DNA from: Trichosphaerium sp. ATCC 40318 | Taxonomy: Eukaryota > Protista > Tubulinea | Direction of reading: 5' to 3' | DNA: 64,000 nucleotides | Assembly (NCBI GenBank): GCA_038496445.1 | Contig: JALMLS010000487.1 | Span: 62,001-126,000, forward strand | In this document: one piece after another, positions 4,876-60,461 of the stretch | How the letters are laid out: each line of letters opens with the position of its first letter | How positions within the stretch are numbered: the first letter of the stretch is position 1 | Made by a program: the position numbers and the translations under genes | The notes under the pieces: generated by a model | The model's database searches: none | Told to the model about the DNA's origin: nothing | The model's input: only the letters and a program-made list of their open reading frames with translations

Positions 4876-5022
4876 TGTCGTATAACTTAGCTAGGGTTAT
4901 AGGACGAGTTGTTGCAGGTACGAGGTAAGGAGAATTCTAAGTTTATTAATCTTATTACAAAATAAGGAACTTCGTTATATTCAGATAACGAATGACGGAT
5001 ATGAATGTGTTCATATACGACA
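4876..5022 (-). repeat. 3' LTR (147 bp)
   Basis: TGTCGTATA...TATACGACA 9-bp inverted ends; identical to 12060-12206. Confidence 0.95.
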
Positions 5023-5040
5023 TACTCCCTCCTTCTTTAA
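5023..5040 (-). other. Polypurine tract
   Basis: Minus strand AAAGAAGGAGGGAGTA directly precedes the 3' LTR and overlaps the pol stop codon. Confidence 0.85.
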
Positions 5041-9650: not shown

Positions 9651-11631
9651 TCATGGCAGGTATTCTGCGCCTTTCCAAGATAATGTGAATAATTGGGAGC
9701 ATCTCGCCATCAATACTGAACTCACTTGTACCAACATTGCAAGGAACTTCTTTAATAAATTTGTTGTTGTACTTTAGTGCAAGTTCGATGACACCATCAC
9801 TAATCTGGCTCTTCGGTTTCTTTTTGATTGGTGTTACCTTCTTCTTTGGAGGTGTAGGGTCGACTATGAAGGGATCATCATCTTCATCGTCGCTAGAAAG
9901 CGCTAAGGGAGCCGCATAGGGGTTGTTGCTTTGAGGGTGATTAGGCGATTGGTTGTATGGATCAAAGTTATTTTGTTGAGGTTGGTTGTAGAGCGCTTGA
10001 AACCCATTGTTATCTTGATATCCTTGATAAGGAGGAGTGAACGGGTTACCATTGTCTATAGAAAGCGCAATGTTAGATTTGTTCATTGAATTGGAGGACT
10101 TACTATTGTTCCATTGATCCAAATTCTTTTGACGAGCATTATCGCGTTGATTTTGAAAGTTAGCGTATACGCTGCATGTTTCTCCGTTCTTGTGTTCTGG
10201 GCCATAACATGTAGCACACAGAATACGTCCATCTTGTTCAATAGTGCGGGCATAGTTGTTACGTCTTTGGTTGTTTCGATTGTTGTTGCGTTGGTTAAAA
10301 CGCTGGTTGTTACCACGTTGGTTGTTGTGATGCTGCCCTTGTTGATTGTTGTAGTTGTTACGTTGTTGCTTTTGGGGACGTCCACCATTGAAACGGTTGT
10401 TAAACTTCCTGTTGGAAGTAAGCTTATCAATCTTTTTGTTCAACTTTTCTATTTCTTTTTCTAGGTCACGTGCCTTTTGAAGTTGCGCTGATTGAACGCC
10501 ATTATTATCTGTTTGCGAAGAATTGATCCAATGAGGAGGGCTATGAGAAGTGTTTGAAGAATTATTGCCAGAACTATCATGACTAATTAGATTAGAGTGT
10601 GAACTGGAAAGTTTGTATTGAATTTCTTTTTTCTCCGCTTTTTCTAAGATTTTTTCTGCGTAATATTTGGACTTAATGTCACCATTCTCATAGTCTTTTT
10701 TAAGTTTAACGTATGTAGGGTATACTTTAGCTCGGAGGGCTTTCTTTAATCCGAGTACAAATTGTTCCGTGATTGCGGAAGAACGTTTATTAGCATACAA
10801 TGCTGTTTCTTTGAGACGTCTCATGTACTGACGACATGTCTCATCATGTAATTGTACACAATCCCTAAAATGAATCACAGATTGAGCTTTGTCCAGCGGA
10901 GTAATAATTTCCGCGATTATAGCGTCATATAGCTTCTTAGGCTTTGCATCTAGCGGGATCGTGGTAAGTAACTTTTTAAGTTCTTCGTTTTTAACATTTA
11001 CTCTGAGCGCTATGGCTAGGGTTTCATCGTCCACGTCATAAGTTTTAGCTAGACTAACACTGAATTTGTACCAGTGGTCTACAGATGCACGGTTTTTTGT
11101 TTTAAGACGCGGGACATAAGCGAGCACATTTTTTAAAACAGTGGGAGATTTTTTATTTTTTACATTTTCGGATTTACCGGTTTTCTTATTTTCTGTCTTT
11201 TCATCCTCACCGTCGGAGCTGTCCTTATCCGTAATATCGGATTCTGTGGAGTCAGCTAATGTGTCTGATTCATCTCCCACATATCCCCTTTTTACCGCTA
11301 TTGATAGTGGAGTAGGTTGTTCTATGTTGGTTGGACTTTTGGGATGAACTTTCTTATCAGCTTTTACGTTTAATCCTTCAGGATTAGACAACCCAGCCAT
11401 TAATTCTTTTTCGAACTTTTGAGGTTTTGTAGAAGCGGGAGGATCTGTGGGTTCTTCATATTGTTCATCACTTTCTGATGCTTCTTCTGTTTGTTGTTCA
11501 AGGTCTTTGTCTTCACGTTGTATTTGTTCCATGTCATGTAAAGCGGAACTGCCGCTATTACCAGAGTCTAGATCGCTTTCCTCACTGATATTAGGAAGGG
11601 GAATGTCACCTTTACGTGGTGTATCAGTCAT
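9583..11631 (-). CDS. gag: Gag with CCHC knuckle plus the N-terminal protease half (DTG)
   Basis: The open frame extends to 11787, first ATG at 11631; capsid-like region QLHDETCRQYMRRL, N/Q-rich region, CATCYGPEHKNGETC, ends MIDTGSTISVIS...RSR*. Confidence 0.9.
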   Translation of the reverse strand: MTDTPRKGDIPLPNISEESDLDSGNSGSSALHDMEQIQREDKDLEQQTEEASESDEQYEEPTDPPASTKPQKFEKELMAGLSNPEGLNVKADKKVHPKSPTNIEQPTPLSIAVKRGYVGDESDTLADSTESDITDKDSSDGEDEKTENKKTGKSENVKNKKSPTVLKNVLAYVPRLKTKNRASVDHWYKFSVSLAKTYDVDDETLAIALRVNVKNEELKKLLTTIPLDAKPKKLYDAIIAEIITPLDKAQSVIHFRDCVQLHDETCRQYMRRLKETALYANKRSSAITEQFVLGLKKALRAKVYPTYVKLKKDYENGDIKSKYYAEKILEKAEKKEIQYKLSSSHSNLISHDSSGNNSSNTSHSPPHWINSSQTDNNGVQSAQLQKARDLEKEIEKLNKKIDKLTSNRKFNNRFNGGRPQKQQRNNYNNQQGQHHNNQRGNNQRFNQRNNNRNNQRRNNYARTIEQDGRILCATCYGPEHKNGETCSVYANFQNQRDNARQKNLDQWNNSKSSNSMNKSNIALSIDNGNPFTPPYQGYQDNNGFQALYNQPQQNNFDPYNQSPNHPQSNNPYAAPLALSSDDEDDDPFIVDPTPPKKKVTPIKKKPKSQISDGVIELALKYNNKFIKEVPCNVGTSEFSIDGEMLPIIHIILERRRIPAMIDTGSTISVISKDCINYVNRSR

Positions 11632-12045
11632 GACAAGACACAAGAGGAGAAGTATGAAGAGGGATGTGATTTGGTATAAAAGTTTTATTTTTGTTATACA
11701 AGAGGCTTGTACGCCTTTACAGTGTTGGGGATTAGTAATCCCTTGAGTGTAGAAGTAGATTGGTGTTACTATTGAGTTGTGAATCAAAAAGTCGCGCGGT
11801 ATTTTGATTCACACGAAGGTCTTGGCTTCGTATAGGTGATGTTTTGGCGCTAGTAAGCGACTTACACGAGCGGATCCGTAGTCCGACGTAGATACTGCGA
11901 GCTTAGTCGACTTACGTAGAAGTAATGTACGGTCTTAGCCGTGGCTTATAGCCAGAGAGAGAGGGAGTTCTTTGACTCCAAAAGTAATAGCACGAAAGGT
12001 GCCGAGTGTAGGTTGATATTAAGAGTACTTACCTTATGCTAAAAT

Positions 12046-12057
12046 CCAGTGTCGCCA
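12046..12057 (-). other. Putative primer-binding site
   Basis: TGGCGACACTGG begins 2 nt after the 5' LTR on the minus strand. Confidence 0.7.
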
Positions 12058-12059
12058 CG

Positions 12060-12206
12060 TGTCGTATAACTTAGCTAGGGTTATAGGACGAGTTGTTGCA
12101 GGTACGAGGTAAGGAGAATTCTAAGTTTATTAATCTTATTACAAAATAAGGAACTTCGTTATATTCAGATAACGAATGACGGATATGAATGTGTTCATAT
12201 ACGACA
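12060..12206 (-). repeat. 5' LTR (147 bp)
   Basis: Identical to 4876-5022. Confidence 0.95.
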
Positions 12207-12986
12207 CACGTTTTAGAGTAATTACACAGAGACCACAGTCCGAGGGTCGTAAGTATAATATTGGCTCACAGTTATAAATGGACTTATCACGGACTTGGTC
12301 TAGAGTTAAAAAAAAGTAAGTTCGGACAGGACCCTATTATTATTTGGCACCCCTGACTGAAAAATAAAGGTCCGTTTTCAATCACGGATTTTCTACCATG
12401 AAATTTTCTATCATCAAAGAAGTAGTCTTGATTGAAAACACTAAATTCTATTTATTTATGGACTATGGGTCTCATAATACACCTTGTAGGGGTTTAGTCA
12501 TGGCTAGAGAAAGCGATTGAATACAGATTGAAAGAAAGATAAGGTGCAACTTAACTACCATTAAACAGCACAAGCACAACATGAGCAACAAGTCCTCACT
12601 TCCATTAAGCGCAAATGGAATGTTGAAGTACCAGATAGTAGGTACCAAAGACCTGGAGTTCGCATTATTCAGTGGCAGTGAAGAATTACTGCAACACTTA
12701 AAAGAAAATCTACCTGCCCCAAAGTGGAATGAGTTCCTAAGCAGTCTGGACAACACCAGCAAGCTACTGGACATTCAAGCGAAAAAAAGGATCCTTCAGG
12801 ACATACTAAAAACAATGAAGGACATAGAGTACGCATAAAGGCCGGTCTGTGGACTCATAAGGCTGAAAAACCCCCCTGTCAACAAAAACAAGGCCTCACT
12901 TTTTTTTTTTCTATTTTCAAAAATCAATCATAATCAATCTTAGTAACTTCTATGTAGCAAATCTGCCCCTAAATGGGTGGCAACTA

Positions 12987-16312: not shown

Positions 16313-17201
16313 GTTTTAGCTGCAAAAAAACCACAAAGAAGGCATAATATCAGGCTTGACAAATCGATTTTTGGCCTGATTCTTTGCACACTAATGCGAC
16401 TGCGCATATAAAACTACAATAAAAATAATTTCTCCACTTGGGAAGTGAGTATTAACTCATTGGCTCTTATTCAGGTAGCTTTGTCTTTAGTTTACAGTAA
16501 ATTTTAAATTAACAATACTGTGTAAGATATTGTCTGCTTCAGTCAAGGTAAGTTGCAGTTGTTTTCGAACGGCTTTGTAACCTTTTCCTATGTTAAGGTG
16601 ATGTTCGCCTTTCAATTAAGCTGTGACAACTTGGGTAGTGATGTTAACAGTCGCTGCCGAAAAATTTTGAGTCGACTTGATACGCGTTTTAGGCCTGACA
16701 GGCACGAGTCACAGACGTAGAAACAATCAACCAGTAAAACAAAAGAATATTTGCCACAAACACAATAAAACTCGAGCTGACGGACAGATCAGGCAGTAAC
16801 TGGATTTTGTTGTTAAAAGTCAGTACGCTTAAAACTTGAATGAAACAGACGTTACAAATTTCTCAATAAACTGTGTAACGTTATGGCTCACACGTTTGAG
16901 GCTGGTTTACTGGTCCTGTCAAAACTGCAAACCTATAGGCTGTGAAATTTGTTTAACAGACTCAAATAGTCTACGAAGTAGTCATTTCTTTAATGTTACG
17001 TTCCACATCTTCTGAGGCAATAAAGAGATAATAGCATGCTGTTTAATGTAGGTCCTTATGCAAGAAAGCATCAAAAGGTTTTTGGCTCATTCTTAGTTGA
17101 TAAATGGTCATGGTATGCTAGCTATAACTTTACAAGGCTCACTAGCAACAATACGATTTGAATTTATTTGAATACACAATTATTTGAGCTCATGTTGTTC
17201 A

Positions 17202-20200
17202 TTAGAGTTGCAATTCAGCAAGTAGTTTGGCAATTCTTTCCTCAAAAGCTAAATTCGCTTGTTTGAGCTCTTCCAGTTTAGCAGTTTTTTCTTCTAGAGC
17301 CAAATTCGCTTGTTTAAGCTCTTTCAGTTTAGAGTTGTCTTCTTCTAGTTTAGCAATTCTCTTGAGTTGCTTGGTGCTGTTTTCTTCATGGTTGGCATTG
17401 GTTTTTTGTAGCATTGTGTTCACCTCTTGCAATTTGGTGTGTGATTCCTCAAGGTCTTGTTTTAGCTTTTCAACTTGTTCTTTTAAGGATGGAACAAACT
17501 GATCTTGCACGCTTAGTTGTTCAGGTTGATTTGGCTTTGCAGCTGCCCATAATTTTCTTAAAGAGTATAAGTTTAAGTTACTTTTGTTTATGCAGTACCG
17601 TTCAGTTAAGAAAGCCTCATCAGGCAAGTCATCTGACTCGCTGACATCATCAAGCAAGTCATACAACACTGTGCCATCTTCAGATTTTGCAATCTCTTTT
17701 TTGTCTCCTGTATGTTTGTTGATACTTGCGTTGGAAGTATTGGTATTTTTGGTTAGTTTCTTCTTCTTGGTTTTCTTGTTTGATTTCTTTTTTAAGGGTT
17801 TTTTCTGAACCCGTTTCTTTGGTTTCTTTACAACCTTAATGACATAACGTGCAACAGCTTGAACATCTAAACAAACAATAAATACAATGCTACATTGTAG
17901 AATGTTACCTTGAGCCACAACCAACTCATCACACGGATACTTATCAACATCTTCTTTTACTGCTTGTCCCTTGTTGTTTACCACTGCATAATGACTTTGG
18001 TATCCTGGTTTAATAGGTCTTCCCTTAAGGTTGTTTAAGTCTCCAGGTTTCTCTATTACCTAGTATTTCTTAAATATAATGTACAGAACCAGCATGTGTA
18101 CTGGATATATGTTGCCAGGTGTGACTAGACTCAAAATAAGTGTTTTTTCAGCTGAATCACGGTCATAAGAACAAGCATATGTGATACTACTCTATTGTAA
18201 AATATTAGAAACAGAATCAGTTTTTGTACTTGTACGGTAAAGTAGATTCCTTGTCCATAATATCCAGCATCCAATGCACATACAGTTCCAAACCCAGCTT
18301 TTACAATACTCTCAGCAGCCTCAGCACTTGTTCCATGCACCATTAACATAACAGGTAACTGAACAATTGATTATGCAAGGATTGTTAAAGAAGCGAATAC
18401 CTCTGTGTTATTAGCTGAGCTTTCAACAGCAGTCAACGATGAAAACTTTTTTGCAATACTTGTTCGAGCATCGCCTTGCCAATCTTTCTTACAAAATAGT
18501 TTGGGCACTTCTCTAAAAACAAAGAGTCAATACTTTCTAAAACATTATGGACATACTGGTGCCTGTGTTTAAGTATTGTGTTGTACATGCCAAAGTTTCT
18601 AAGTAATACATCATTGCAAACAAGTTGTGCTGATACAAGTTTGACTTGATCATATCCATGCATTTTTGACAGTTGGTCATGAAGAAACGCCAATTCTCTT
18701 TGGGCTGCAGTAGTCTCAGTGAACAGATCCAATGTCCTGTAGTGAGTTGCCATTTCATCAAAACCCCTTCAAAAGAGTTAAATGCAATAAAGGTGAACAA
18801 ACTCAACTTGTTTTTAGACCGATCCCAGCCATGTGCATAATCCAATCGTTTTTTTAATCCCCAAACTGTTGTACTTTTTAATCCTTGAAAACAGGTCAAA
18901 TAGTTAAAATAGCGTTGCATATACCTGATGTAGTGTTTTTTACTCTCTTAGGAATTATAGGGTGAATAGCTGTTTGTTTTCTCCACATCTTATCTGGTAA
19001 ATCAAATAAAATACCTTCCATCAGTTCTCCTTGTTTAACCCAAAAGTTCTATCAATAAAACAATCAATAGTTTGTCCTTAGTAAAGAGATGTGTTTGTAC
19101 CGGAGATTGTACTAATGTGCGATTGTAAGTACAAATCAATGCACAAATACCTTTTTGAATTGCAAGTTTGAAGTAAGAACGTGTAGGCTTGAGGTATGAT
19201 TAGTCAACATTTGTTGATATTAAAAAGAAGTACCAAGTACTGTAACCATTTTGCAAGATTGTATCTCCATTTTGGACTCTCTGTATCATATGATAGCCAT
19301 AGCTTGTGACACTGCTGCTGATCTCTTGGAAAGTGTGCCAAGAGAGTTTCAAAAAGATTAGTATAAGCAGGATCATTGTCAACCGCTTTTATCAGTATTG
19401 TTTTGAAATCAATTGTTTTTTTACTCATAGTACGTGAGAAAACATCACTTGCATTTGATAAAATGAGAAATGCTGAGGTTTGTTTATACAACGCTAATAT
19501 TGTGTTAACATTATCGTATTGTAGTAATATATAATGACCTGCATAGAGTAAGGGAACCCAACCTTTGTTATCAGTTGCTGCAGCGTCTGCTTGGCATTCA
19601 ATTAACTGTGTGATGCACTCACAATGACCATTTTTTGCTAAAAGTGTCAAAATAAGTGTTTTCCAGAGGAATGTAAGCACCAGCAATATGTAAAGCTGTG
19701 CGGCCTTCATTATCTGTAGCATTGATGTTTGCCTTTGCATTGAACATCAATTTGACAATATCTGTGTGTCCATTCAGTGCTGAGAAGTGTGAGTAACATA
19801 CACGCTATATATTTAAACCACTCTACCTGCTTGATGTAAAGCTGTGCGGCCTACATCATCTGTAGCTTTAGCATTTGCCTTTGCATTGATCATCAATTTG
19901 ACAATATCTGCGTGTCCATTCAGTGCTGAGAAGTGTAAGTTATGTTGTGTATTTACAATACGGAACCTGCATAATGTACGGCTGTGCGGCCTTCATTATC
20001 TGTAGCACTGACACTTGTCTTTGCATTGATAAACAATTTGACAATAGCTGTGTGTCCCTCCTGTGCTGAGAAGTGTGAGTTATGTTGTATATTTACAATA
20101 ATGTACCTGCATAATGTACGGCTGTGCGGCCTTCATTATCTGTAGCATTGATACTTGCCTTTGCATTGATAATCAATTTGACAATAGCTGTGTGTCCCTC

Positions 20201-21447
20201 CTGTGCTGAGAAGTGTGAGTAATATATGTTGTATATTTATGGCATTGTACCTGCTTTATGTAAAGCTGTCTGGCCATCACTATCTTTAATATTTACATTT
20301 GCTCTGATCAATAGTTGAACAATATGTGTGTGTTCATACTGTGCTGAGAAGTGTAAGTAATATATATTGTATATTTATGGCATTGTACCTGTGTGTAGCA
20401 ACAGTTCAACCACTTTTGTGCGTCCATTCCGTGCTGAAAGTGTGAGTAACATACATTGTATATTTACAACTCTGTACCTGCAAAATGTAGAGCTGTATTG
20501 CCACTATTATTTGCAATAATATTTGCATTTGCATTGAACAACAGTTCAACAACATCTATGTGTCCATTCCGTGCTGAAAAGTGAGTAACACACATTGTAT
20601 ATTTACTCTTTACCTGCGAAATGTAAAGCTGTATTGCCATTACTATTTGTGGCATTGATATTTGCATTTTCATCTACCAACAGTTTAACAACATCTGTGC
20701 ATCCATTCCATGCTGAGAAGTGTGAGTACATTGTATATTTACAATACTGTACCTGCATAATGTAAAACTGTATAGCCAAAGACTGGAGCATTAGCATTGA
20801 TATCTATTTTAGCTTTGATAAATAATTTAACAATTTGTGTGTGTCCCTCTTGTGCTGAGAAGTGTGAGTAACATTTATTGTATATTTACGGCATCGAACC
20901 TGCATAATGTAAAGGTGTACAGTGATGGCTATCTAGAGCATCGATATTTGCGCTTGCGCAGATCAACAATTTAACAATATGTGTGTGTCCCTCTTGTGCT
21001 GAGAAGTGTGAGTAATATGCATTGTATATTTACAATACTGTACCTGCTTTATGTAAAGCTGTATAGCCATCATTATCTGTATCATTGCCATTTGCATTAG
21101 CATGTAAAAAGCTCAACATAATATTGGGCAAACGATATTTAGCTAAATTAGGTTGATATGTAAACATTTATCCATACAAACCTGAAAACCATAGAATTTT
21201 ATTGGCTGTCTCTTCATTATATGTCCTTTTCTGTAGTTTAGTATTAACTACAAATAAATTGTAAATGACCAATACTGCCTAAGATATTATTTCACCTGAT
21301 GTGATATTGAACGTTGCTCTCTGCCATACCAGTTCTGTAGAGTATTATGCATTAATGATTAGCAAACAAAAAACAGTTCATGCCTTTTTGTTTGTGTTTT
21401 TCTTCTTTGTGCTGGTTTGACATGAGATGTCGCTTTTGGCGATACAT
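17202..21447 (-). CDS. Ankyrin-repeat / PARP-like ADP-ribosyltransferase / coiled-coil protein, copy 1
   Basis: 12 ankyrin exons, a helical linker, ART motifs VHGT, YYGQGIYFT, SITYACSY and CDELVVAQ|DVQAVARYVI, then Lys-rich and coiled-coil C-terminus; spliced by eye, start uncertain. Confidence 0.85.
19539..21142 (-). repeat. Tandem exon+intron ankyrin array (12 exons)
   Basis: Exons 21142-21044, 20998-20900, 20854-20753, 20712-20614, 20573-20478, 20433-20389, 20343-20251, 20205-20107, 20065-19967, 19925-19827, 19779-19681, 19637-19539 (99,99,102,99,96,45,93,99,99,99,99,99 nt), all phase 1-1. Confidence 0.9.
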
Positions 21448-29859: not shown

Positions 29860-32637
29860 TTAAAATTCGATGTCGTTTACAAAGCGTCTTATCATATCGT
29901 ATGCACGTCGAGGCTACAAATCAAACATTAGTAACTGGTGACTCAGAAAAAGACAAAAAGATGTCTTCACATTATGAATTCGTTTCAAGATTTTGAATTG
30001 CGTGTCGCTTGTAGGTGTAGTAAAACCGATTATTTACCTGATCTTGAGGAACAAGATGACCTGCATCTCTTACAACAGCTTGGGTAAAGTTATTGACCTT
30101 TCTTACAAACCCAGCAACCTATCAAAGATGTTAACAAGTCATAAAAATACAGAAAATAACAAGATCTAAAACTGTTTTATGAACACATGCAGAATATTGA
30201 CTTTAGTGTTGTAAATGACTTTGTAGGCAAAGTATTCGGTATGAAATTAGACCAATTAAATACAATTATTGCCATTTGGAAGAGTAAAGAAAAGATTGTA
30301 AGTTATTATGGAATTGTGAAGAAAACATGAACTTCGCTTTGTTTTCAAGTTTACTCACCTCTACGTCATTTGGATCTACCTTCCATATCTTCTTTTTGGC
30401 AACTAAGTATTCAGATTGACCGGTCCACTTGAGTTGACGTAGAAAGTTCTCACAAACAGCTGCTGATAAAATAATATCATTTTGACCGTTGTAAATTAGA
30501 ACCTTGTAGTTTTCCATCAAAGGTACAAGGAATTGTAAAACATCCACCATCCAATCGTTTATCAAGTACTTTTCAACTATTTTAATGTTAATATTCGATA
30601 AAGAAAAGAATAAGAAGGGTGACATAACATGAGCATGTTTCACAAAATGTTTCTTGAAAAACGAAAATAAACAAGCATGAACCACGCCTCCCACACCTTT
30701 TTTTTTGGAGACAAGTTTGATAGGTATGTAGAACAACAACTCTTAATTGTTGGTGCACAGAAAAAATAAAAGTGACGACATGTAGAAAACAACAAGCTGT
30801 CATTGCTGCAAGAAAAAAATAAGAATACTGTACCTGTATTGTTCTGCATTTCAAAAGTGTAACCACCAACATGTACAGCATCTCTTGTTGTTTCCAAGTT
30901 CAAGAACTGTCCGTAAGGATTTGGTGGATATACTGGTGTACGTATGTTGTAGTAGTTCGTTGTGCCGCTGATGTTGCTAAACAAAAATGAGAACGGGTGG
31001 AAAAAACGTAAATGGTTTGGTTCTTAGGTCTGGTTTAGTCAAAGTCGACCCACAACAATGCTGTGAAGTTGGGAATTTTCAAAAGAAATGTACTCGCTTT
31101 GTTTGTAGCAAGAATAGGAGTAGTTTTGAGATTTTATACGATACTGTAGAGAAGAAAAAAGAATGTGATTTTCAATATGCAACATGACGGAATTGGACAG
31201 TAACGTAGAATGTTGATATCAAAATAGAATTAACTTCAATCCGTACTTGAAGTATGTTGGGTATTGAAAAAAGTCACCATTGATCATCTCGTCGAAGTAC
31301 AAGAAAGCTTTGTAATACTCTTTTTGAAGAATATATTTCTTAATATTTGCTTCATAGTTTTGAATAACAATCATCTCATTATAGTCTGCAATACCAGCAT
31401 TAAAAGCGAGAGTACCATAGCCCTGAAATTAAAAACTCGGTTAGTCATATACTCTAAAATCATTGTCTGGATTCGCGACAAAAGAGGAGCAATCCAAAAA
31501 AGTGGTCAAAACAAATGATAACATTTACCTGTGTTTGAGTAAGAGGTTGCATCATACCATCACCAATAGATATTCCTTTAAGGTTAATCTTCTTTTCAGC
31601 TTTAGGATTATTTATATGAATTGTATAAGCTGCAGCTGGGATATATTTACCAGCGTAAGATTCACCTAGAAACGTATTAGCTCATTTTTCTTTTTTTCAG
31701 AAAGCGAGCGTCAAAGTTCGTACCTGTTACATAGAAATCGGCTGCTCTGTACGATTCAAACATTTCAAAGAATTGGTAAAGGGTGGTGTACCTTGAAAGA
31801 ACATTTAATATCACGTGATATAATGAAATTCAAAAAAAGAACAAAAAATAACAAAAAAAGATTGACACATACAAATTTGCGCCTACTTCGGCCTCATCTG
31901 TAACAAATCCAGAGTTACTGGTTGTAAAACTGAACCCTAAAAAATCATTAATTATTTCTACATAAGACAATACTTTCAATTATCCCACAGGGAGATAAAT
32001 GCCAATATGATGAAGTCAAAAACGAAAAAAAATCATTTGGTTTGTACCGACACCAACTGGATTATCAATGTACACGACATTAAATAGCTTAGTCCATGAA
32101 AATGGGCTTGCTTTTAGCGTTTTACCATCGCCGTCAACCGAGAAAGGACCGTTTTCTTCAAATAGCCCAGCCATAGATGAGAAACCTGGTCCGCCCTACG
32201 ACTGTTAGCGTAAAACCACAAAAAGAGATTTGATAGCGTCATCAACAGGTAAATCAAGTAAAACTAGCTAAAAATGCTAGCGGACGCACGTTTAGCCATA
32301 GCAGAACCGGTTTTTCTTCTGGGTTAGCGCATTCGCATGGGAAAAACCAGAAAAACATATTGCTGTTTGTTGTCGCATTTACAGTGATGTACCCGGAGTA
32401 ACTAGTTAAACCACCAAGTGTCACCTTACTATTGAGGATTTTAGCTTAAAATCGCTTATTATTGTTTACCTGAGCGACCGAGCTGTTGCAGCGTCATTTG
32501 GAAGGTACTTAGATACAAACAACGGTTCTGAGCATACTGCCAAGCCTGTAGCCGTTTTAATATATTGTACATAATGAACGATCAAACATACCGATAAAAC
32601 ACGCAATGACAAGTATAACGAGTTGTCTGCTTGCCAT
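29860..32637 (-). CDS. Serine carboxypeptidase S10 (CPVL-like), secreted
   Basis: SYSGYITV, WLNGGPG, YIDNPVG, GESYAG, YNGQND and AGHLVPQDQ motifs; signal peptide. Confidence 0.95.
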
Positions 32638-33648
32638 TTTTAGGGCCGTGGGTAACTTCGCACTTAATTGGTCCGCTAAGGAAGGTTGAGTGTCCCGGAT
32701 TTGGATATTATGTTTGTATCGTTAAAATTGCACGTGGTAGTTTTTTTCTCTTGTGTTGTTAATAAGGTAGCTACACAAAAAGCCACACTGTGGTAGTGTC
32801 CACATACTCAAAACATTCGCACTCTATGCAAATTATAGCCTTTCACGTGATTTTATATAAGTTGATTACTTCAGATTTTTTTGTACTTCTTCAGTTTGTT
32901 CATTAATATTCTTTTCCATTTCACTTTAACGTTGGTAAGTTTCATTTGCTACACTATAGGCATGGTATGGAACAATTTTCTAGACAAGGTTATTCAGCAA
33001 TTGTAGTCTCACATCAGCCTGTTGCATGAAGTAAATTGGCGATAGGATCGCCTTAACATAAAGTAATTTTAGATTATTATTACCTCTTGCCTTGCGATAC
33101 TGTAGCTTAACGATGTGTAGAGTCTGATTTCTACAATATTGACCACTCTTATGTATGTAGCATATGTTTAACCACCTCTTAAAACTTGCAAATACTGCCA
33201 TGCGCTAGATTATTTTGTGATTCGCGTAAAACTATTAGCTAGCGCCTAGGCTATTGTATGAATATCAAAAGATGAATTCGTTTCCAATAAAGTATCCGGG
33301 AACTGTTTGCTTATTCTCCGATATTGTAAACTCTTTTTCACGACCGTAGGTGCGGAAAAAATAAAACCCCGCAATCCCATTCGATTGTATTTATTGGATA
33401 TGTAGGATGGTTCGCTTCCAAGCTACATTAGCGAACTGTTATACTCGAGTTATTTTTATTCAAAACACTAAGAAATCATGTGATCATCTTATCTAACCTT
33501 TGTAGGACAAGGCAATCTAATTAGTTGGCCTTCGTTATATAAATTTACCCGCTGCCTAATGTGATTTAACTGCACACTAGCGTATGAGAAAGTTACTAGC
33601 GAATCATTCTACTGACATTTTCAAACAATTAACAATACAAGCGGAAAA

Positions 33649-34644
33649 ATGGTACGAAGCAAATTTCCGCTGTTCTATCTCTGTATCTCACAGTATACCC
33701 AGAACTGGATTGTTTTATCGGTTTGTGTGGCACTCTTCCTTACGCAAGTTACAGCGCTAGACAAAAACAAAACGCCTGGACAAAACTTCGACCTCAGCAA
33801 CTGGAAGATAACACTTCCTGATTCATCAGCAAGCGAAAGATCACCTTCTCAAGTACGCAACTATTTCTCCTCTTGCTACAAAGTCATGCCTTTGTAATAT
33901 TCCTGTTAGCTGCGCACATACGTTTCCAACTACTTTTACACTGGTGGCGATGGATCAATGACCTTCTATTGTCCTTCAAATGGCGGTACAACAAGTGGAT
34001 CAAGTTACCCAAGATCTGAGCTACGTCAACTCTGTAACCCAGGTGACGATAACTACGTACACAACAACAATGCTAAGCTAAAGCAAACTCGCTGACTTTT
34101 TTTTAGAATTGGCACATATCTGATAAAAACGTGATGAAAGCAAGACTCAAAGTTGATAGAGCCAAAACAGATGCCAAAAAAGTTGTAGTACTTCAAATTC
34201 ACGCTTTTGACGCACCACCTCTTATCAAAATTCAATGGGAATCTAACGGGAATATCTACGCTTTGTACAAGAAAAACAGAAACGGTGACGATGCTCCAAA
34301 GGTATGTATAACATTAAATTGCATAGAATTTACACTTCAATTAACACAAACTTGAGGTTACTCTGGGCAGTGTTGGATTTGGTCGTTTTGATATGGAGAT
34401 ACATGTACGTCCTCGACACCATGTAAGTTGTTTTGATGTTTACCAATAGGCTGACAACGGGCGGCTCAAAGTGTACCTCAATGGTGCTAAAAAACTGGAC
34501 GTAAATGTTGGTGGATATTGGAGCAGCTTCACAAACTACTTCAAGGCTGGTAGCTACTTACAAGCAAACTCTGGCGGTCAGTTCGCTACAGTCCGATTCT
34601 ATGAATTGGATATCACCAGCCAAGGGCCTTGTGAAGAAGATTAA
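33649..34644 (+). CDS. Polysaccharide lyase family 7 (alginate lyase), copy 1
   Basis: Signal peptide, FDLSNWKITLP, YPRSELR, QIH and YFKAGSYLQ; ATG-only first exon. Confidence 0.92.
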
Positions 34645-45091: not shown

Positions 45092-46538
45092 ATAGCTATC
45101 CTAAACGAAGACCCTTCTCTATATCTAACAAATGAATAGTACTCTACATTCTCAAGTTGATACTCCCTGTAATATTAAACACTGTAAGCTGTGGTTGTTC
45201 CAACTTTATTGATCAAACACAGCTCCAGTATAAGAACTAAACCCTCTGCTATTGTATCTATTTCTGCATGTTGAACAACAAACTGTTTAACTGTTTAACC
45301 GGTTTATGTCCGCTAAATGTGATTCATGTTTACTTCAACCTTACATAGCGATCGCCACTGACGGTCAATCAAAAAACTTCAGGATTTTGGTTCTGCATAT
45401 ACATGCCTCTGCTACTTTATATTACTATAACTTGCGATTTATTAAACCGCAGCCGACAAATAAAACTTTACATCATTACGAATTAGGTAACCACCAAAGA
45501 AACAATGAGATCAACAAGATTGATAATGACAGAAGTCGACATTTTACAAGTCAATAGCTTGTGGTGAACTTACATTCCCATTTTCCTCCTTCGGTGTAAG
45601 TTACATCTCCCTTTCTACCTCGAGTAAAGTCAAAGTAACATCCTGGGAAAGGCGTTACATCTGTCTTGACGTTAAAGATACTATGAGGTGATGATTTGGG
45701 TAATAAGGAGGGAACTGATAGTTACAGAGTCTTCACTGTTGGGTATATTATCGAGCATCTGCGTTATACTTGGTTGTGAGCGAGGTATTTACTTACTGGC
45801 TGAAACAGCAACGTAGTCTGGTACATCAAAAGGCTTAACGTTCCAAGAGAAGTTCAGTGGAAGCTGTTGAGAGAAAATTGGATAGGGCTTCGTTGGAGCA
45901 GTTTTTTTGAAGGTCACGTTTCTAAATACTTGAAACGTCGCAATGGCATGTTGCTCATTGTGTATACACAGTTCAAGAGGAGTTTGGAGGAGGGTCAATG
46001 TTAAATTCTGGCGTAGGTTGATCAATCCATGAATATTGTCAAAAAAAAGTAAAAAATTCGGCACTATTTATCCTATATTATGCCATAGGAACTATTTAGA
46101 AAGCCCTTTTTAGGGGTTTGGGGAAGCATAACCTAGCGGCAACTGAGCGCCATAGCCTAGTTATCTCCCTTTGTGGAGAACAGTTCAATATCACTTTGAC
46201 ATTTTTTCGCCTTTTTTTTTTGACATTTTAGAATCCCCATTCAAAAGCGAACAGTCACTGCGTACTGTTCGAAAAGATACATATTCGTTCGAAAAAACAA
46301 ACAATCCATTCCACCATTTTACGTTCTTTAGCAACGTTCTGCGAATGCTGTAGTCTGTAAATTATGGCCAAATTTCCTTCGAACGACTGTTCGAAACCAT
46401 TTTCTACTATCATTATTTCAACACCGTCGCAACGTATCAACTCAAATTAAGTAAGCTCCGCTTCGTATAAGTTCGTTAAGCTACCACGTGATTAAAACTC
46501 AAAGGCACAGCAAGCGGAACACGAAACTTAACGCGCTT

Positions 46539-49500
46539 ATGGAGAGTTGGCATAAATTGTTGCCTAAACGACGACTGTTTACTCACGTTAACAGTTTTTT
46601 CACTTATTTTTGCTTGTACGAAGCAGCAAATATTGTGTTACTCACTAAAAGCATAGGACAACTTAAAGTCGACAAACACCATGTGAGAAATAAACGGTAT
46701 GAACCATTTGTTAATACATTGTTGTGTAATACTACTACAGAAGAATTGCAACGCCTTCAAAGGCTTGTTAAAAAGTACAAGGCACTTAAAGAGTTCTGGA
46801 ATATCACAACAGGTAATGCATTTTATATCTTAGGCAGTATTGTTTATTTATTTTTAGTAAATAAACTAAAGAAAAAGCTACATAAACAAGAGACAGTTGA
46901 TAAAATTCTATTGTTATCAGGTTTGTGTTTCAAGGTTAGTGCACATATCAACCCAATCTAGTTCGGGCTGATTTGCCAAATATTCTGTCAATGTGTTTAC
47001 AGTCAAATGCAAATATCAATGCTGTAGATAAACATGGCCACACAGCTTTACATTATGCAGGTACAGCGTTGTAAACATACAATGTACTCACACTTCTTAG
47101 CACGGAATGGACACACAGATATTGTACAATTGTTGTTGAATGCTAATGCATATGTCAATACTGTAGACAAACGTGGCCGTACAGCTTTACATGAAGCAGG
47201 TGCAGTCTTGTAATTACACAATGTACTCACACTTCTCAGCATTTCATGGAAAAACAGATATTGTTAAATTTTTGTTGGATGCTAATGCAAATGTCAAAGT
47301 TGCAGATAGTGATAACCAGACAGCTTTACATGATGCAGGTATAGTGTTGTAAATATACAAAACTCACACTTCTTAGCATGGAATGGACACACAGATATTG
47401 TACAATTGTTGTTGAATGCTAATGCAAATATCAATACTGGAACTAATTATGGCAAGGCAGCTTTACATCATGCAGGTATAGTGTTGTAAATATACAATGT
47501 ACTCACACTTCTCAGCACGGCATGGACACACAGATACTGTACAATTGTTGTTGAATGCTGATGCAAATATCAATGTTGTAGATAAACACAGCAAGACAGC
47601 TTTACATTATGCAGGTACATCGTTGTAAATATACAATATACTCACACTTTAGCACAGCATGGAAACACAGCTATTGTACAATTGTTGTTGAATGCTAATG
47701 CAAATATCAATGTTTTAGATAAACATGGCAAGATAGCTTTACATTATGCAGGTATAGTGTTGTAAATATACAATGTACTCACACTTCTCAGCGTGTTATG
47801 GACAGACAGATATTCTACAATCGTTGTTGAATGCTAATGCAAATATCAATGCTGTAGATAACAATGGCAAGACAGCTTTACATGAAGCAGGTACAGTGTT
47901 GTAATATCAATCTACTCACACTTCTCAGCATGGCGTGGAAACACAGATGTTGTACAATTGTTGTTGAATGCTAATGTAAATGTTAATGCTGTAGATAAAC
48001 GTGGCGGCACAGCTTTATATTATGCAGGTACAGTCTTGTAATTACACAATGTACTCACACTTCTCAGCACGGGATAGGCATTTATATATCGTTAAATTGC
48101 TGATCAATGCAAATGCAAATATCAATGCTACAAATGATGTATATGCTGTGAACAAACAACAGTTTCAAAACATATTTAGAAAGGTGGTTGACAATGACCC
48201 TGCTTATACCAATGTGTTTGCACATCTTTTGGCACACTTTCCAAATGATCAAAAACAATGTCATGAACTTTGGCGAAACTCTGCATATACAGATAGATCC
48301 AAGTGGAGGTGCAATCTTGCAAACTGGTTACAATACTTGGTACACCTTTTCAATTGCAATGTTTACTAATCATACAAGCCTACACGCTCTTACTTCAAAC
48401 TTGCAATTCAAAAAGGTATTTGTGCATTGATTTGCACTTACAATCGCATATTTGTACAATCTTCGGTACAAACATTACTCACTAGTTTCAAACTGTTTTC
48501 AATTATTTATTGTTTTTACAAATAGAGCTTTTGGGTTAGCCAAGGAGAACTGATGGAAGGTATTTTGTTTGATTTACCAGATGACATGTGGAGTGAAAAA
48601 CAAAGTGGTACTGTCGCTGAAATGTGTGCAGAAGAAGGATGGTGTATAAACTCCATTCAACCTGACAAACAAAACAAAGGTACATGTCAAATGGCTTATT
48701 ATAACACTTGTTTACTTTTGTACAGCTTTTTTTCATGATTTCGTATGCAGCTATTGTCATAAACACAGGTTAATAAGTGGAAATACTGTACGTAAATATG
48801 CTACAAATTTGTTTAACTTGAGGAGGACTTTCATTCTGCTCTCAATTGTAAGAGTAACCTTTATACTATTCAACCTATCATTCCAAATACAAACTTAAGC
48901 AACACTACAGCAGGTACAAACATCTCTGTTGTTTTAATCATTTGACTTTGTCATCAAGGATTAAAAAGTGTGACAGCTTGGGGATTAAACCCACGATTGG
49001 ATTATGCACATAGCTGGGATAGATCCAAAAACAAGTTGAGTTTGTTCACCTTTATTGCCTTTAACTCTTTTGAAGAGGTTTTGTAGAAAAAGCAACACAC
49101 TACAGAACATTGGATCTTTTCAACAAGACTGACACTGTAGCCAACAGAGAATTAGCATTTCTCCAAGACAAATTGTCTAAAATGCATGGATATGATCAAG
49201 TCAAACTTGTATCAGCACAACTTGTTTGCAATGATGTACTACTTAGAAACTTTGGCATGTACAACACAATACTTAAACACAGGCACCAGTATGTCCGTAA
49301 CATTTTGATAGTATTGACTCTTTTTTTTTTTAGAGAACTACCCAAACTATTTTGTAAGGAAGATTGGCCACATGATGCTCGCACAAGTATTGCCAAGAAA
49401 TTTTCATCGTTGCCTGCCATTGAAAGTTCAACTAACAAAGAACAGGTACTTGTTCCAATACCATTCCTTACATAATCAATTGTTTAGCTACCTGTTGTGT

Positions 49501-50610
49501 TAATGGTGCATGGAACAACTGCTGATGCTGCTAAGAGTATTGTAAAAGCTGGGTTTGGAACTGTATGTTCATTGGATGCTGGATATTATGGACAAGGAAT
49601 CTACTTTACTGTACTACTACCTTCGATAAGTATTCTGTTTCTGATATTTTTCAATAGAGTAGTATCACATATGCTTGTTCTTATGACCGTGATTCAACTG
49701 AAAAAACACTTATTTTGAGTCTAGTCACGCCTGGCAACATATATCCAGTACTCATGCTGGTTCCGTACTTTATATTTAAGAAATACTAGGTAATAGAGAA
49801 ACCTGGAGACTTAAACAACCTTAAGGGAAAACCTATTAAACCAGGATACCAAAGCCACTATGCAGTGGTAAACAACTTAGGAAAAGCAGTAAAAAAAGAT
49901 ATTGATAAGTATCCATGTGATGAGTTGGTTGTGGCTCAAGGTAACATCTATGTACTGTAACGCTTGTGTTAACAATTGATTTAGATGTTCAAGCTGTTGC
50001 ACGTTATGTCATTAAGGTTGTAAAGAAACAAAAGAAACGGGTTCAGAAGAAAGGTAAAACAGCAAACAAGAAAAGTATCAATGAACAATTAGAAAAAAAA
50101 GGGATTTCAAAATCGGAAGATGTCAACAAGTCAGATGACTTGTTTGATGAGAAAGATGAATTTGATGAATTGTCTGAGGAGTGTTTCATAAGTGAACGGT
50201 ATGACATACCATAAAACATAACAGCATACTAATTTATTCAAAGAAAACTATGGGCGGCTGCCTATCCAAATCAACCAGAACAACCAAGTATGCAAGATAA
50301 GTTTGTAGCGTCCTTAAAAGAACAAGTTGAGAAGCTAAAACTAGAGAACGCAGCCATCCTTGTCAAATCAAATGCCATAAAAGAGAAGAATTCAAAGCTT
50401 GAGGAATCAAATACCAAATTGCAAGAGGTGAACTTGATGCTTCAAAAAACCAATGCCAACCATGAAGAAAACAACACCAAGCAACTCAACAGAATTGCTA
50501 AACTAGAGAAAAACAACTCTAAAATGGAAGAACTTAAACAAGCAAATTCAGCTCTAGAGGAAAGAATTGCCAAACTACTTGCTGAATTGCAAGTCTCAAG
50601 AGCAACATGA
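46539..50610 (+). CDS. Ankyrin-repeat / PARP-like ADP-ribosyltransferase / coiled-coil protein, copy 2
   Basis: 8 complete 99-nt ankyrin exons plus a partial one; ART motifs VHGTT, YYGQGIYFT and CDELVVAQ; coiled-coil tail; paralogue of 17202-21447; start uncertain. Confidence 0.85.
46962..48140 (+). repeat. Tandem exon+intron ankyrin array (~139-bp unit)
   Basis: 99-nt exons 46962-47060, 47101-47199, 47240-47338, 47377-47475, 47516-47614, 47653-47751, 47792-47890, 47929-48027; 38-40-nt near-identical introns GT..TGTAA..ACTCACACTT..AG. Confidence 0.92.
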
Positions 50611-50692
50611 GCTCAAATAATTGTTTCAAATAAATCGCATTGTTGTTAGTGAGCCTTGTAAAGTTATAGCTAGCATACCATGACAACCAACT

Positions 50693-54133: not shown

Positions 54134-54336
54134 TGATACACCATTCACTCACTGCGAAAAAAAAAGAATGTACATAATAGTAAAAAAAAAAAGAGTTACT
54201 TTGTTTTTTGTGACTTGTTGGTTTTGTTCTAAAAAAATTGCACGTGATAAGTGATGATATGTTGCATTTAAAAGTTTATGGTTCGGTTTAATGATTTGAC
54301 ATTTATACAGGTTATTACAGACATAATTCTTGCTTC

Positions 54337-55626
54337 TTACTGCCCACCTACAAAAAATTAAAACACGCATTTGATTTTCGTGTGAAAACTCTTGTATTTG
54401 CTTACCCAAGCGATTTCCACCACCCCAGTTGTATCCAGGGGTACGTGGACCTCCTTGAGGTCCTGGATGTTGACCACCGATAGGTTCGTTGAACCATTTC
54501 TTGCTAAAAAATGACATTAGTTCCGTGTATTAAAAATAGCTTAAAAATAGCGTTTCTTGATGCCCTTTGTAATCAACACGTACATAAAGTTTGGTGTAAC
54601 TAGTATTGGAGGTCTTCCTTGCGTAGCTGGTATAACATCCTAAGAAGTTTGTCACAATAAGTTTCATTCACAGAACAAGATGACTCGACAACAAAAGAAT
54701 TTCAAAAAAAATTCTCTAACCTGCATGTAGTAGTATAAGTGTCCTGTAAGTACGCCAAGTAATTCTGCAATAGGCAGAGAACCGCTCATGAGCAAACGCA
54801 TACCCATCAATACCTGTAGACAAGTCAGACGTTAGGAAACAACAAAATTTAGTAAAAATTAAAGACAAGCGTCAACAGCGCTCTAGCACCATGCTAAATA
54901 ATGCCAGATGGTTGTACTCATGTCACAACGCGTCATAAGATTGTAGAAACTAAAGCGCTTCCAGATGACATGTTACGTACCCAAGGGAAGTATGCTGAAG
55001 GGAAACGAAGACCAAACATAAGAGTCATGGTGATGTTAGGATTTCTTCTTGCCCAGTAGTATAGGAGTGACATTATTAATGCCATGCCCATGACTGGTAT
55101 GTTTAAGAAGTATGCTGGGACCTAACGGCGTTAAGTTTATTTTTGATTTTCATAAAAGAAAAAAAAATAACAGATAGGGTCCAACTGTACGTCTTTGAGT
55201 ACGTACCATGAGTGTCACTGCGGAGAAGAGTACGAAAAAAAAAAAGTCGCCTGTTCGGCCCAAGAATTCATTTGTTTCTAAAGATTGGCCGTAACGCATT
55301 CTATAAAGTCAAGGGCTAAAGTAGTGACGAAACAAAATGAAATGACGTGGAGGATACAAAAACATCATGTTAATCAAGAAAGGCAGCCCAAGCCTGCCAT
55401 GGAAGCAGAAACCAGTAATAATACGCCATATCTACCAGAATATAAGATTTTAAAGGTGTTTTGAACGACGTACTTCAAGTTTAAACAAAATAGCGTTAAA
55501 ATTGAGCGTTAGTATGTATGGACTTATTAAGCCAAAATTAGGTGCAATAGTGAGCGCCATAGAAAGGCTGAAGAGATATTTTGTAACAATAGGTATGCCA
55601 TTCCACCAGTTTTGTAAATCAGACAT
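54337..55626 (-). CDS. DERL1: Derlin (DER1-like, ERAD)
   Basis: WWNGIPIVTKY, EIWRIIT, YYWARRNP, FPSAYFPW, GHLYYY and the C-terminal WGGGNRLG (SHP box). Confidence 0.92.
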
Positions 55627-58802: not shown

Positions 58803-59451
58803 AAAAAAACAAATAAAAGCGTGTCGTTTTTTCAAGCGTATCTTGTGGATTTGCACGTACATCACGAACCCTTTTGGCCCTTGTATAACTCCAATACATA
58901 ATACAAACGAAAGCAACGTTACAAAGCACGTTTTGTGTGTATCACGTGTTTTTCGTAATAATTTGGGTGTGCACGTGCGAACCGTCGTGAGTACTGCCTC
59001 CTTGCCACACCAATAAACTTGTTGGCACCATTGTTGGGCTTAACACTGTTCTACACTGGTACAATGCCTCAATACAATCTCGTAAAAAGTTTTCACTAGC
59101 GTGAACAGTTTTCTGACACTGTTAGCAGTAGGCGCCTGGATGGAGTACCCAATTAATACGGACGATACAAACAGCCTAGCCATCACGTGAAGTAACGTTT
59201 TTGTCAGTTTCAGCCATCAATGTGCACCTAAAGCGGATAATTTGAAACGCCGCACTCTCTTCTAAGCAGAAGAATCAGTTGCCACGAAGAAAGCGAAGCC
59301 TGTGGTAATCGCTAGCACTCCTTAAGTTTGCCCGCTGTTTGTTGTGATTGACTTGCGTACTAGCGCTTGCGAAGGCACACTAGCGTATGAGAAAGTTACT
59401 AGCGAATCATTCTACTCAAGTTTGCAAACACTAAACAATACAAGCGGAAAA

Positions 59452-60461
59452 ATGGTACGAAGCAAAATTCCGCTGTTCTATCTCTTTATCTCACAGTATA
59501 CCCAGAACTGGATTGTTTTATCGGTTTGTGTGGCACTCTTCCTTACGCAAGTTACAGCGCTAGACAAAAACAAAACGCCTGGAAGGAACTTCGACCTCAG
59601 CAACTGGAAGATAACACTTCCTGATTCATCAGCAAGCGAAAGATCACCTTCTCAAGTACGTAACTATTTTCTCGACATGTCACCGTAACATTGCCTCTAG
59701 CTACGCTCGTATACCTCCAAGTACTTTTACACAGGAGGAGACGGATCGATGACGTTCTATTGTCCTGCAAATGGTGGTACAACGAGCGGTTCAAGGTATC
59801 CAAGATCTGAGTTACGTCAACTCTGCAACCCTTCAAACGATAATCACGTGCGTGTATTTCATAACCAAGATAACTGTGTGTACTCATATTTTGTTTGTAG
59901 AACTGGAAAGTAGCCGGAAGGCACATAATGAAAGCAAGACTCAAAGTTGATAGAGCTAAAACAAACGCCAACAAAGTTGTCGTACTTCAAATTCACGCCT
60001 TCGAAGCACCACCTCTTATCAAAATTCAATGGGAATCTAACGGGAATATCTACGCTTTGTACAAGAAAAACAGACAAGGTGACGATGCTCCAAAGGTATG
60101 TATACGCTACCACTGACTAAAACCTTTCGACTACTACTTTTCAATAGCAACTTTTTGTACTAAGTCATTCAAGGTAAACCTTGGCCGTGTAGGATATAGT
60201 AAGTTTAGATTTGAGATACGTGTAAGTAGCCCTGTTTTTAGTTTGTAAAGATTGTATCTTAATCTTCGGTAGGTTATCAATGGACGTCTTCAAGTTTTCC
60301 TTAATGGTGCAAGAAAACTGAATGTTAATGTTGCTGGATATTGGGGAAGCTATACAAATTACTTTAAGGCAGGTAACTACTTGCAATCTAATTCTGGCGG
60401 ACAGTTCTCGACTGTGCGCTTCTATGAATTATCAATCACCAGATCTGGATCTTGTTCTTAA
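59452..60461 (+). CDS. Polysaccharide lyase family 7 (alginate lyase), copy 2
   Basis: RSELR, QIH and YFKAGNYLQ; same intron positions as copy 1. Confidence 0.92.

Follow-up and report, generated by a model that had tools for sequence, protein, structure and literature searches.

Gene A, one of two related genes in the window (the whole 64,000-nucleotide stretch of Trichosphaerium sp. DNA which we analysed), joins in frame an array of ankyrin repeats, each encoded by its own exon, to an ADP-ribosyltransferase (ART) domain of the PARP type, and its sequence suggests that it evolves like a recognition-and-tagging protein engaged in an arms race. The explanation towards which we lean is that germline tandem duplication, homogenisation of the copies and diversifying selection acted on an enzyme that would bind a target and ADP-ribosylate it, probably in biotic conflict. 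The genomic part of this explanation is very probable; the conflict role, taken by itself, appears moderately likely. The features are as follows (positions in the window).

46539-50610, + strand: complete model of gene A (1033 aa in 24 exons, free of internal stops)
46539-46920, + strand: N-terminal exons 1-2 of gene A (exon 1 is 46539-46812, boundaries uncertain)
46858-46920, + strand: exon 2, conserved in frame in the paralog gene B
46962-48067, + strand: tandem array of 8 units, each a 99-nt phase-1/1 ankyrin exon and a 38-40-nt intron
46962-47060, 47101-47199, 47240-47338, 47377-47475, + strand: ankyrin exons 1-4 (99 nt, phase 1/1)
47516-47614, 47653-47751, 47792-47890, 47929-48027, + strand: ankyrin exons 5-8 (99 nt, phase 1/1)
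48068-48597, + strand: ninth, partial ankyrin repeat at the head of exon 11, then a family-specific linker domain of ~110 aa (exons 11-13)
48598-48865, + strand: in-frame insert of ~61 codons with two extra introns, containing Cys/His (ends approximate)
48959-50010, + strand: PARP-type ART domain with the preceding strand and helices (exons 16-22)
49509-49511 (H740), 49602-49604 (Y771), 49922-49924 (E848), + strand: catalytic triad
50011-50287, + strand: linker, first rich in Lys/Arg and further on in Asp/Glu (introns 50199-50243 and 50288-50326 spliced in a contig)
50327-50610, + strand: C-terminal coiled coil or leucine-heptad tail and stop (L/I/M in 10/13 at one heptad position)
17201-21142, - strand: gene B, paralog, modelled from its first ankyrin exon onwards, with an uninterrupted frame up to the stop

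All the introns of gene A are of the GT-AG type and measure 35-60 nt. The preliminary description had the gene span begin with the array, at 46962; it begins 5' of this position, since exon 2 is kept in gene B, and its start codon is uncertain. Exons 1-2 gave no match in family searches. Gene A is intact and transcribed, the evidence for splicing and transcription coming from its 3' end: a public contig which shows zero differences from gene A lacks the two introns listed above for this region. For intron 16, the boundaries 49040-49086 were dropped, as 49035-49075 suits gene A, gene B and the transcript length. A natural spliced homolog, P0001 (39% identity to gene A over 643 columns), was used as a proxy for the gene A product in domain searches and for the fold, and gene A itself was searched exon by exon. 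No tRNA or Rfam match was found in the whole 64-kb window; a reverse transcriptase lying within it is part of an LTR retrotransposon.

Gene A encodes an ankyrin-repeat protein, whose 33-residue repeats match Pfam Ank with E-values of 5e-7 to 7e-3 (exon-by-exon search); four canonical exons pass the Pfam cut-off, and the first, diverged and cap-like repeat matches below it. The arrangement initially noticed, one ankyrin per 99-nt phase-1/1 exon in a unit of ~139 bp, holds for all eight exons: each repeat has a symmetrical exon to itself, these exons share one length and follow each other in tandem, and TRF gives a period of 139 with 8.1 copies and a score of 1436. It had also been noticed that the array introns look about as conserved as the exon frameworks, and their pairwise identities are indeed 87.2% for introns and 87.7% for framework codons, against 59.0% for binding-face codons. 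Extra conservation of these introns was considered and rejected, their identity between genes A and B (82%) being that of ordinary orthologous introns (81.5%). The array introns of gene A also contain a hairpin, which is missing from the B2, B6 and B7 introns of gene B. As the array introns are no better conserved than ordinary ones and the hairpin was lost in three of them, there is no need to invoke an additional intron function.

Gene B, located 25 kb from gene A, is intact and has the same intron family, linker, H-Y-E ART and tail, without the insert. Its 12 ankyrin exons, all in phase 1/1, measure 99, 99, 102, 99, 96, 45, 93 and five times 99 nt. We rejected the possibility that it is a pseudogene, since its deletion amounts to 183 coding nt and is in frame. 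The predicted change of repeat number by in-frame units is thus seen between the paralogs, with 8 repeat exons in gene A and 12 in gene B, every indel being in frame. The repeats cluster mostly by gene (2 label changes against 6.4 in shuffles), and cross-gene pairing is limited to the cap repeats A1 and B1. The binding arm has grown as a single unit of exon plus intron was copied in tandem, and the repeat copies of gene A have been recently homogenised.

We then compared seven repeats per gene, with the ankyrin positions randomised in DARPins (2, 3, 5, 13, 14 and 33; PMC1261162) as reference. The residues originally listed as variable read identically in the gene A repeats: RN, FH, WN, RH, QH, CY, WR and RD after AA, Y, E, D and H after LH, and KH, KR, SD, NY and NN at the beta-turn. 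Their identification with the DARPin positions is right for the most part. All six of these positions vary strongly, being among the nine most variable codons of an otherwise near-constant frame, and taken alone they are enriched in variation (permutation p 8e-5), but the residue after LH is position 10, outside the set. Positions 16 and 32 are as variable as several DARPin positions.

The contact codons of gene A have a pN of 0.45 (95% CI 0.38-0.52) against a pS of 0.08 (distinct-allele binomial, p 8e-6). The excess of dN/dS at these codons, which the preliminary description proposed to check against intron divergence, is present: with GY94, omega is ~12 in gene A (LRT p 1e-7) and 3.6 in gene B (p 0.001), values which are possibly overstated, since the framework omega (2.5 in gene A, 0.9 in gene B) is itself about 1 or above and the synonymous yardstick may therefore be depressed. 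The conservative figure comes from the introns: positions 1+2 of the contact codons in gene A carry 1.36 variants per site against 0.41 in intron interiors, a ratio of 3.3 (p 0.003). By pairwise counting the excess is weaker in gene B (contact pN 0.44; pS 0.24 overall and 0.42 at the same codons) and in the transcript L001 (contact pN 0.45 against 0.27). Recombination is able to inflate such tests; a PHI-like test for it did not reach significance (p 0.11-0.6), yet 53% of the informative site pairs are incompatible. Diversifying selection on the binding-face codons is clear in gene A and weaker in gene B. The linker and ART domains, compared between the two genes, are under purifying selection (pN/pS 0.31-0.54).

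The in-frame fusion of the array to an H-Y-E ART, already recognised from the sequence, is confirmed by the triad and by the C-terminal domain, for which a PARP fold is predicted from a model of the homolog P0001. This model has a pLDDT of 88 and matches tankyrase, PARP1 and PARP3 in Foldseek (E ~1e-11, 16-19% identity); exon 19 of gene A matches Pfam PARP with E 1.7e-4, and P0001 exceeds the Pfam cut-off. In 26 homologs the Y and E of the triad are invariant; some distant homologs have Q in place of H. The ART core of gene A likely contains a conversion tract. The linker domain is probably helical and has no match in Pfam, SAM, WGR or Atlas; a Death-like fold suspected by eye was unsupported by searches. 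The insert, missing in gene B and mostly missing in P0001 and P0002, holds two extra introns (48680-48725 and 48788-48822), exon 14 being defined by prediction only; a FAR1/WRKY-like identity was abandoned, as no family matched exon by exon.

These features suggest a mechanism. Gene A, intact and transcribed, would belong to an ankyrin-PARP family expanded in the Trichosphaerium lineage, in which germline unequal crossing-over and gene conversion may alter the number and order of repeats with the frame unbroken. The ankyrin groove would bind a protein target, the ART would move ADP-ribose from NAD+ onto this target or onto itself, as tankyrase does, and the enzyme may be oligomerised by its leucine-heptad tail, standing in for a SAM domain. 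Biotic conflict would most likely be the driver, the enzyme recognising and disabling proteins that come from giant viruses, from intracellular bacteria or from non-self cells. In favour of this, the Trichosphaerium genome contains 1581 gene models of giant-virus origin (PMC10521059), and in fungal NLR ankyrins a like evolutionary regime has been linked to non-self recognition (PMC4986451).

The alternative which survives best, though we think it unlikely, is an ordinary signalling or regulatory enzyme used like tankyrase, with the array as a by-product of duplication and the variation due to relaxed constraint or to tuning to a host partner. Binding positions are the most variable ones in ankyrin repeats generally (PMC1261162), ankyrin-PARP fusions with housekeeping roles arose at least twice (PMC2964712), and the framework codons of gene A change at the neutral rate of introns, which fits relaxed selection. 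However, relaxed constraint predicts the neutral rate at most, and the contact codons exceed it 3.3-fold (p 0.003), their omega being far greater than 1; the several diverged paralogs of the lineage also speak against this alternative. Tankyrases (clade 4) and the clade 1A ankyrin-WGR-PRD PARPs of Dictyostelium and ciliates (PMC2964712) have the same N-terminal ankyrins and H-Y-E catalytic domain, and may share with gene A the logic of binding and modifying. Nevertheless gene A, judged by sequence, is not a tankyrase: the tankyrase-type SAM domain, reported absent at the outset, has no match in exons 11 and 13-15 or in P0001, genes A and B have 8-12 repeats against 15-18 in tankyrases, which are restricted to animals, the identity is only the 16-19% given above, and no tankyrase is among the phmmer PDB matches up to E 1. 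Nor does it belong to clade 1A, as neither WGR nor PARP_reg was found in the exons searched or in P0001.

Improbable as well, and somewhat more so, is a large innate-immune repertoire of Amoebozoa, in which ankyrin arrays varied both by recombination and by combinatorial exon skipping would direct a so far undescribed branch of PARPs straight at the proteins of giant viruses or of intracellular bacteria, sensor and effector lying on a single chain that has no NLR switch. Neither ankyrin nor PARP is mentioned in the main text of the Trichosphaerium genome paper (PMC10521059), and we found no literature on ankyrin-PARP immunity in amoebae or protists.

Slightly less probable still is a combinatorial library made by splicing, in which variable skipping of repeat exons would give many binding surfaces per gene. 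All the array exons are symmetrical, and computation agrees with their proposed frame neutrality: skipping any one preserves the frame and leaves Ala as the junction codon; moreover each intron splits helix 1, so skips would create new junctions. Tandem duplication, however, is enough to explain the symmetry. Very small introns are as a rule spliced out through intron definition, with which skipping is rare, and all the array introns have strong, near-identical splice signals at merely 38-40 nt. No joint within the array was found, in one run which barely covers it, and the transcript L001 carries an unbroken run of repeats. The brown-algal ROCO LRR and NB-ARC-TPR genes (PMC11378527) resemble gene A in giving every repeat a symmetrical exon, in the shuffling of these exons, in diversifying selection and in a proposed immune role, and differ by LRR exons of 72 nt in phase 2 with Roc-COR, where gene A has ankyrin exons of 99 nt in phase 1 with PARP; alternative splicing, reported for the ROCO genes of Ectocarpus and giving up to nine splice forms in brown-algal ROCO genes, is demonstrated there, while in gene A it is conjectural.

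We consider it doubtful, and more so than splicing, that gene A is an executor of allorecognition or cell death, the array sensing non-self alleles after fusion and the ART killing through NAD+ depletion or modification of host targets, like fungal het NLRs. The genome paper describes a multinucleate organism whose life cycle is complex (PMC10521059), and gene A shares the evolutionary regime of the ankyrin and WD repeats of Podospora NLRs (PMC4986451). The likeness to these NLRs, with their ANK/TPR/WD repeats of high internal conservation, extends to homogenised repeats, variation in repeat number, fusion to an enzymatic effector, and positive selection on the ankyrin concave face and beta-hairpin. 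However, the NACHT/NB-ARC switch was found in none of the exons searched nor in P0001, a PARP-type ART at the C-terminus serves as effector, every repeat has an exon and a conserved intron to itself, and the amino-acid identity of the repeats is under the 85% criterion used for the fungal genes. Programmed somatic diversification, by targeted mutation or directed cassette exchange, is very improbable despite the concentration of change in few codons amid near-identical introns, as neither donor cassettes nor a dedicated recombinase lie nearby, the only reverse transcriptase found is that of the LTR element, and the substitution spectrum (17 variants from A, 14 each from C and G, 9 from T) is without base bias and hence without the adenine targeting of DGR-like mutagenesis.

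To return to germline duplication with selection on the binding face, gene A resembles DARPins by its variable positions on a near-constant frame, but its variation is natural and germline, positions 10, 16 and 32 vary too, and nothing points to a library within one cell or clone. The Tetrahymena LRR genes with 90-bp exons (PMC6564038), also from a protist, share units of exon plus intron of fixed length and phase and unequal crossing-over; they differ in being LRR genes in phase 2, numbering thousands, with no ART described. Repeats that are homogenised while selection acts on their binding face have already been described in the ankyrins of fungal NLRs, in brown-algal ROCO genes and in Tetrahymena LRR genes; we found no paper which pairs this regime with PARP, the pairing that the sequence of gene A suggests. 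With the family, the pattern would reach Amoebozoa, coupled there to an effector new to it, and a PARP branch as yet undescribed would be added. It is a concrete, testable candidate for amoebal defence against giant viruses and intracellular bacteria, with repeats and enzyme separable for expression and assay, and would still be a clean example of repeat-array evolution if its role is housekeeping. What distinguishes gene A itself is its strong selection signal, its 61-codon insert and the likely conversion tract in its ART core.

Its ART groups with Trichosphaerium transcripts (support 100/100) inside one PARP branch, and the lineage holds several diverged ankyrin-PARP paralogs, L001 being the spliced ankyrin-ART transcript of one of them. 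That the ART came from a virus or a prokaryote was rejected: pattern scans of IMG/VR and GTDB gave no relatives, and the viral structural matches are generic PARPs. A metagenome scan for the family returned 4 loci, all distant. In samples from other eukaryotes, the same ART branch is joined to ankyrins in P0007 and P0009, follows a hydrophobic segment resembling a transmembrane one in P0004 and P0014, and in L008 probably sits downstream of Roc-COR ORFs.

Two related genes and their neighbouring features are referred to below:

46539-50610 (+): gene A, an ankyrin array joined to a PARP-type ADP-ribosyltransferase (ART) domain
46962-48067: tandem array of gene A, repeat units A1-A8
48598-48865 (+): 61-codon in-frame insert of gene A, carrying Cys/His residues and two further introns
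46030-46230: MITE-like element of about 200 bp with terminal inverted repeats, immediately upstream of gene A
21142-17201 (-): gene B, paralog of gene A, an open frame with 12 ankyrin exons
20433-20389 (-): 45-nt half-repeat exon of gene B, phase and splice sites retained
17512-17474: intron of gene B with a GC donor

The model of gene A has 24 exons and encodes 1033 residues with no internal stop; all 23 introns (35-60 nt) are GT-AG. It opens with an N-terminal part whose start is uncertain, followed by eight full repeats and one partial repeat, about 110 residues of linker, the 61-codon insert and the ART domain; a second linker, first basic and then acidic, and a leucine-heptad tail complete it. 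Family searches were made per exon. In the one public run found, X1, a contig shows zero differences to 50114-50640 and lacks introns 22 and 23, which means that gene A is expressed as RNA and that its 3' part undergoes splicing; over the array, X1 gives minimal coverage. Other X1 contigs are intron-less relatives, mostly less than 90% alike, and two contigs hold copies related to the inverted-repeat element. Among four members compared, only gene A has the insert, for which the exon-by-exon family search gave no match; it is possibly an integrated domain. The match of one X1 contig extends into it, and another paralog may carry it as well.

The array has a period of 139 and 8.1 copies (score 1436), each unit consisting of a 99-nt exon, in phase 1 at both ends, and of a GT-AG intron of 38-40 nt sharing a branch-like motif 12-14 nt upstream of the intron end. 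Searched one by one, its exons match Pfam ankyrin models, in agreement with the preliminary description of 99-nt phase-1/phase-1 ankyrin exons in units of about 139 bp. Compared in pairs, the introns are 87.2% identical and the framework codons 87.7%, the seven binding-face (contact) codons 59.0%: the introns are indeed about as conserved as the frameworks, and the residues listed in that description are correct. Their identification with the positions randomised in DARPin libraries (2, 3, 5, 13, 14, 33; PMC1261162) stands except for the residue after LH, at position 10, which is among the most variable of the array though outside the DARPin set.

Exon 19 matches Pfam PARP (E 1.7e-4), and H740, Y771 and E848 are all retained; the fusion of the array to an H-Y-E ART, claimed earlier, is in frame. 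From this triad we infer that the domain would be active; an H-Y-E triad does not discriminate between mono and poly activity. Among 1.84 billion representatives, the natural ORF 49089-49472 has two relatives, P0001 and P0002, both from intron-less contigs of a single JGI sample. L001 has at least seven ankyrin repeats directly upstream of P0001, with a scaffold gap between, hence a paralog has a transcript that combines ankyrins and ART. The predicted structure of the P0001 ART (26 homologs, pLDDT 88) resembles the catalytic domains of tankyrase, PARP1 and PARP3 (E about 1e-11, identity below 20%), and the Atlas agrees. In the ART tree, genes A and B fall in a 100/100 clade with P0001, P0002, P0017 and P0016; P0016 stems from MMETSP0405, Trichosphaerium sp. 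ATCC 40318. This placement supports Trichosphaerium as the source of the window without proof of the strain. The window, with GC near 37% and small introns, is consistent with the published Trichosphaerium genome (GC 37.69%; PMC10521059). The wider ART branch has motifs of its own and is present in eukaryote-like contigs elsewhere, next to ankyrins (P0007, P0009), after a transmembrane-like stretch (P0004, P0014) or as a tandem pair (P0003); no relatives were found in viral and prokaryotic collections. On contig L008 (3-4036), a Roc-COR ORF is followed by same-strand ORFs ending in this PARP branch; known as neighbours on one strand, they are possibly a ROCO-PARP fusion in another eukaryote.

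Binding-face codons of gene A have a pN of 0.45 (bootstrap 0.38-0.52), and their excess has a p of 8e-6 when each derived allele is counted once. For gene A, a two-class GY94 model puts omega at 12 in contact codons (tested against 1, p 1e-7) and at 2.5 in the framework; in gene B the values are 3.6 (p 0.001) and 0.9. As a framework omega at or above 1 warns of a synonymous rate possibly estimated too low, intron interiors were added as a yardstick: variants at contact sites of gene A exceed those of the introns by a factor of 3.3 (p 0.003), and framework sites have an equal number. The proposed check of repeat-exon dN/dS against intron divergence thus came out in favour of an excess at contact codons. 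The substitution spectrum of the array has no adenine bias. When pN/pS is counted in this way between the two genes, linker and ART give 0.31-0.54, and both are thus under purifying selection. A role as a housekeeping regulator seems unlikely to us.

In clustering, repeat units keep largely to their own gene (2 label changes, against 6.4 when shuffled), and only the cap-like first units pair across genes. The synonymous difference is 0.08 among the repeats of A, 0.24 when these are compared with the repeats of B, and 0.29-0.32 between the flanking domains of the two genes; as it is lower within A than between genes, the array of A expanded or was homogenised after the split. The ART core (49490-49940 vs 18360-17910), 93-95% identical with a pS of 0.07 against the 0.29-0.32 of the flanks, is likely a recent conversion tract between the paralogs. 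Introns are alike in A2/A8 (98%) and A4/A6 (100%) while the paired exons differ by 15%, a pattern that would fit conversion or recurrent change; 53% of informative site pairs are incompatible, and a PHI-like recombination test on the array was not significant. Array introns are 82% alike across genes, against 81.5% for ordinary orthologous introns, so no special intron function is needed; the splice signal makes up about half of a 40-nt array intron. The intron interrupts helix 1 at the second Ala codon, and therefore every exon subset joins in frame, as anticipated, with Ala kept at the junction; in gene B, the exons departing from 99 nt (102, 96, 45 and 93 nt) all keep the frame. Retention of any one array intron gives an early stop. 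That such junctions serve a splicing library is, in our opinion, rather improbable.

What the data show is an exon-intron unit that is neutral to the frame and was recently homogenised, a binding face with more amino-acid change than expected, an intact triad in the fused PARP-fold domain, and transcription of gene A. We favour, at slightly better than even confidence, a reading in which unequal crossing-over and conversion in the germline would reshuffle the binding surface, the ankyrin arm would bind a protein which the ART would ADP-ribosylate, the leucine-heptad tail would oligomerise, and biotic conflict would be the selective driver. An executor of allorecognition is a distinctly unlikely role for gene A, and programmed somatic change of the array can hardly be entertained.

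The ankyrin arm evolves like those of fungal NLRs (PMC4986451), but no NTPase domain was found in the exons of gene A that were searched, which places it outside the NLR family; its architecture is that of the ROCO genes of brown algae and the LRR genes of Tetrahymena (PMC11378527, PMC6564038). Gene A probably acts like tankyrase, yet it is not a member of that family: as already suspected, searches of the exons found no tankyrase-type SAM domain. WGR and regulatory domains were also looked for and not found, placing gene A outside clade 1A (PMC2964712). Ankyrin-PARP fusions have at least two earlier origins (PMC2964712), and that of gene A looks like a further, independent one; in the literature covered, which includes few subscription journals, we found no paper on a fusion of this type. 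The observation is real: a known diversification regime is combined with an effector previously unreported alongside it.

Other features of the window are the following:

4872-12209 (-): young Ty3/gypsy-type LTR retrotransposon, 5 kb from gene B, with 154-bp LTRs 99.4% identical and ORFs of 734 and 1537 aa matching protease, RT, RNase H and integrase
30266-30984 (-) and 54149-54517 (-): serine carboxypeptidase S10 gene fragments (E 3e-7) and a weak SMCHD1 S5-like match (E 1e-3)
33572-34619 and 59375-60442 (+): two copies of a duplicated gene, 79% identical

Of these copies, the one at 33572-34619 matches Alginate_lyase2 (E 5e-11), which is consistent with a seaweed-feeding amoeba.
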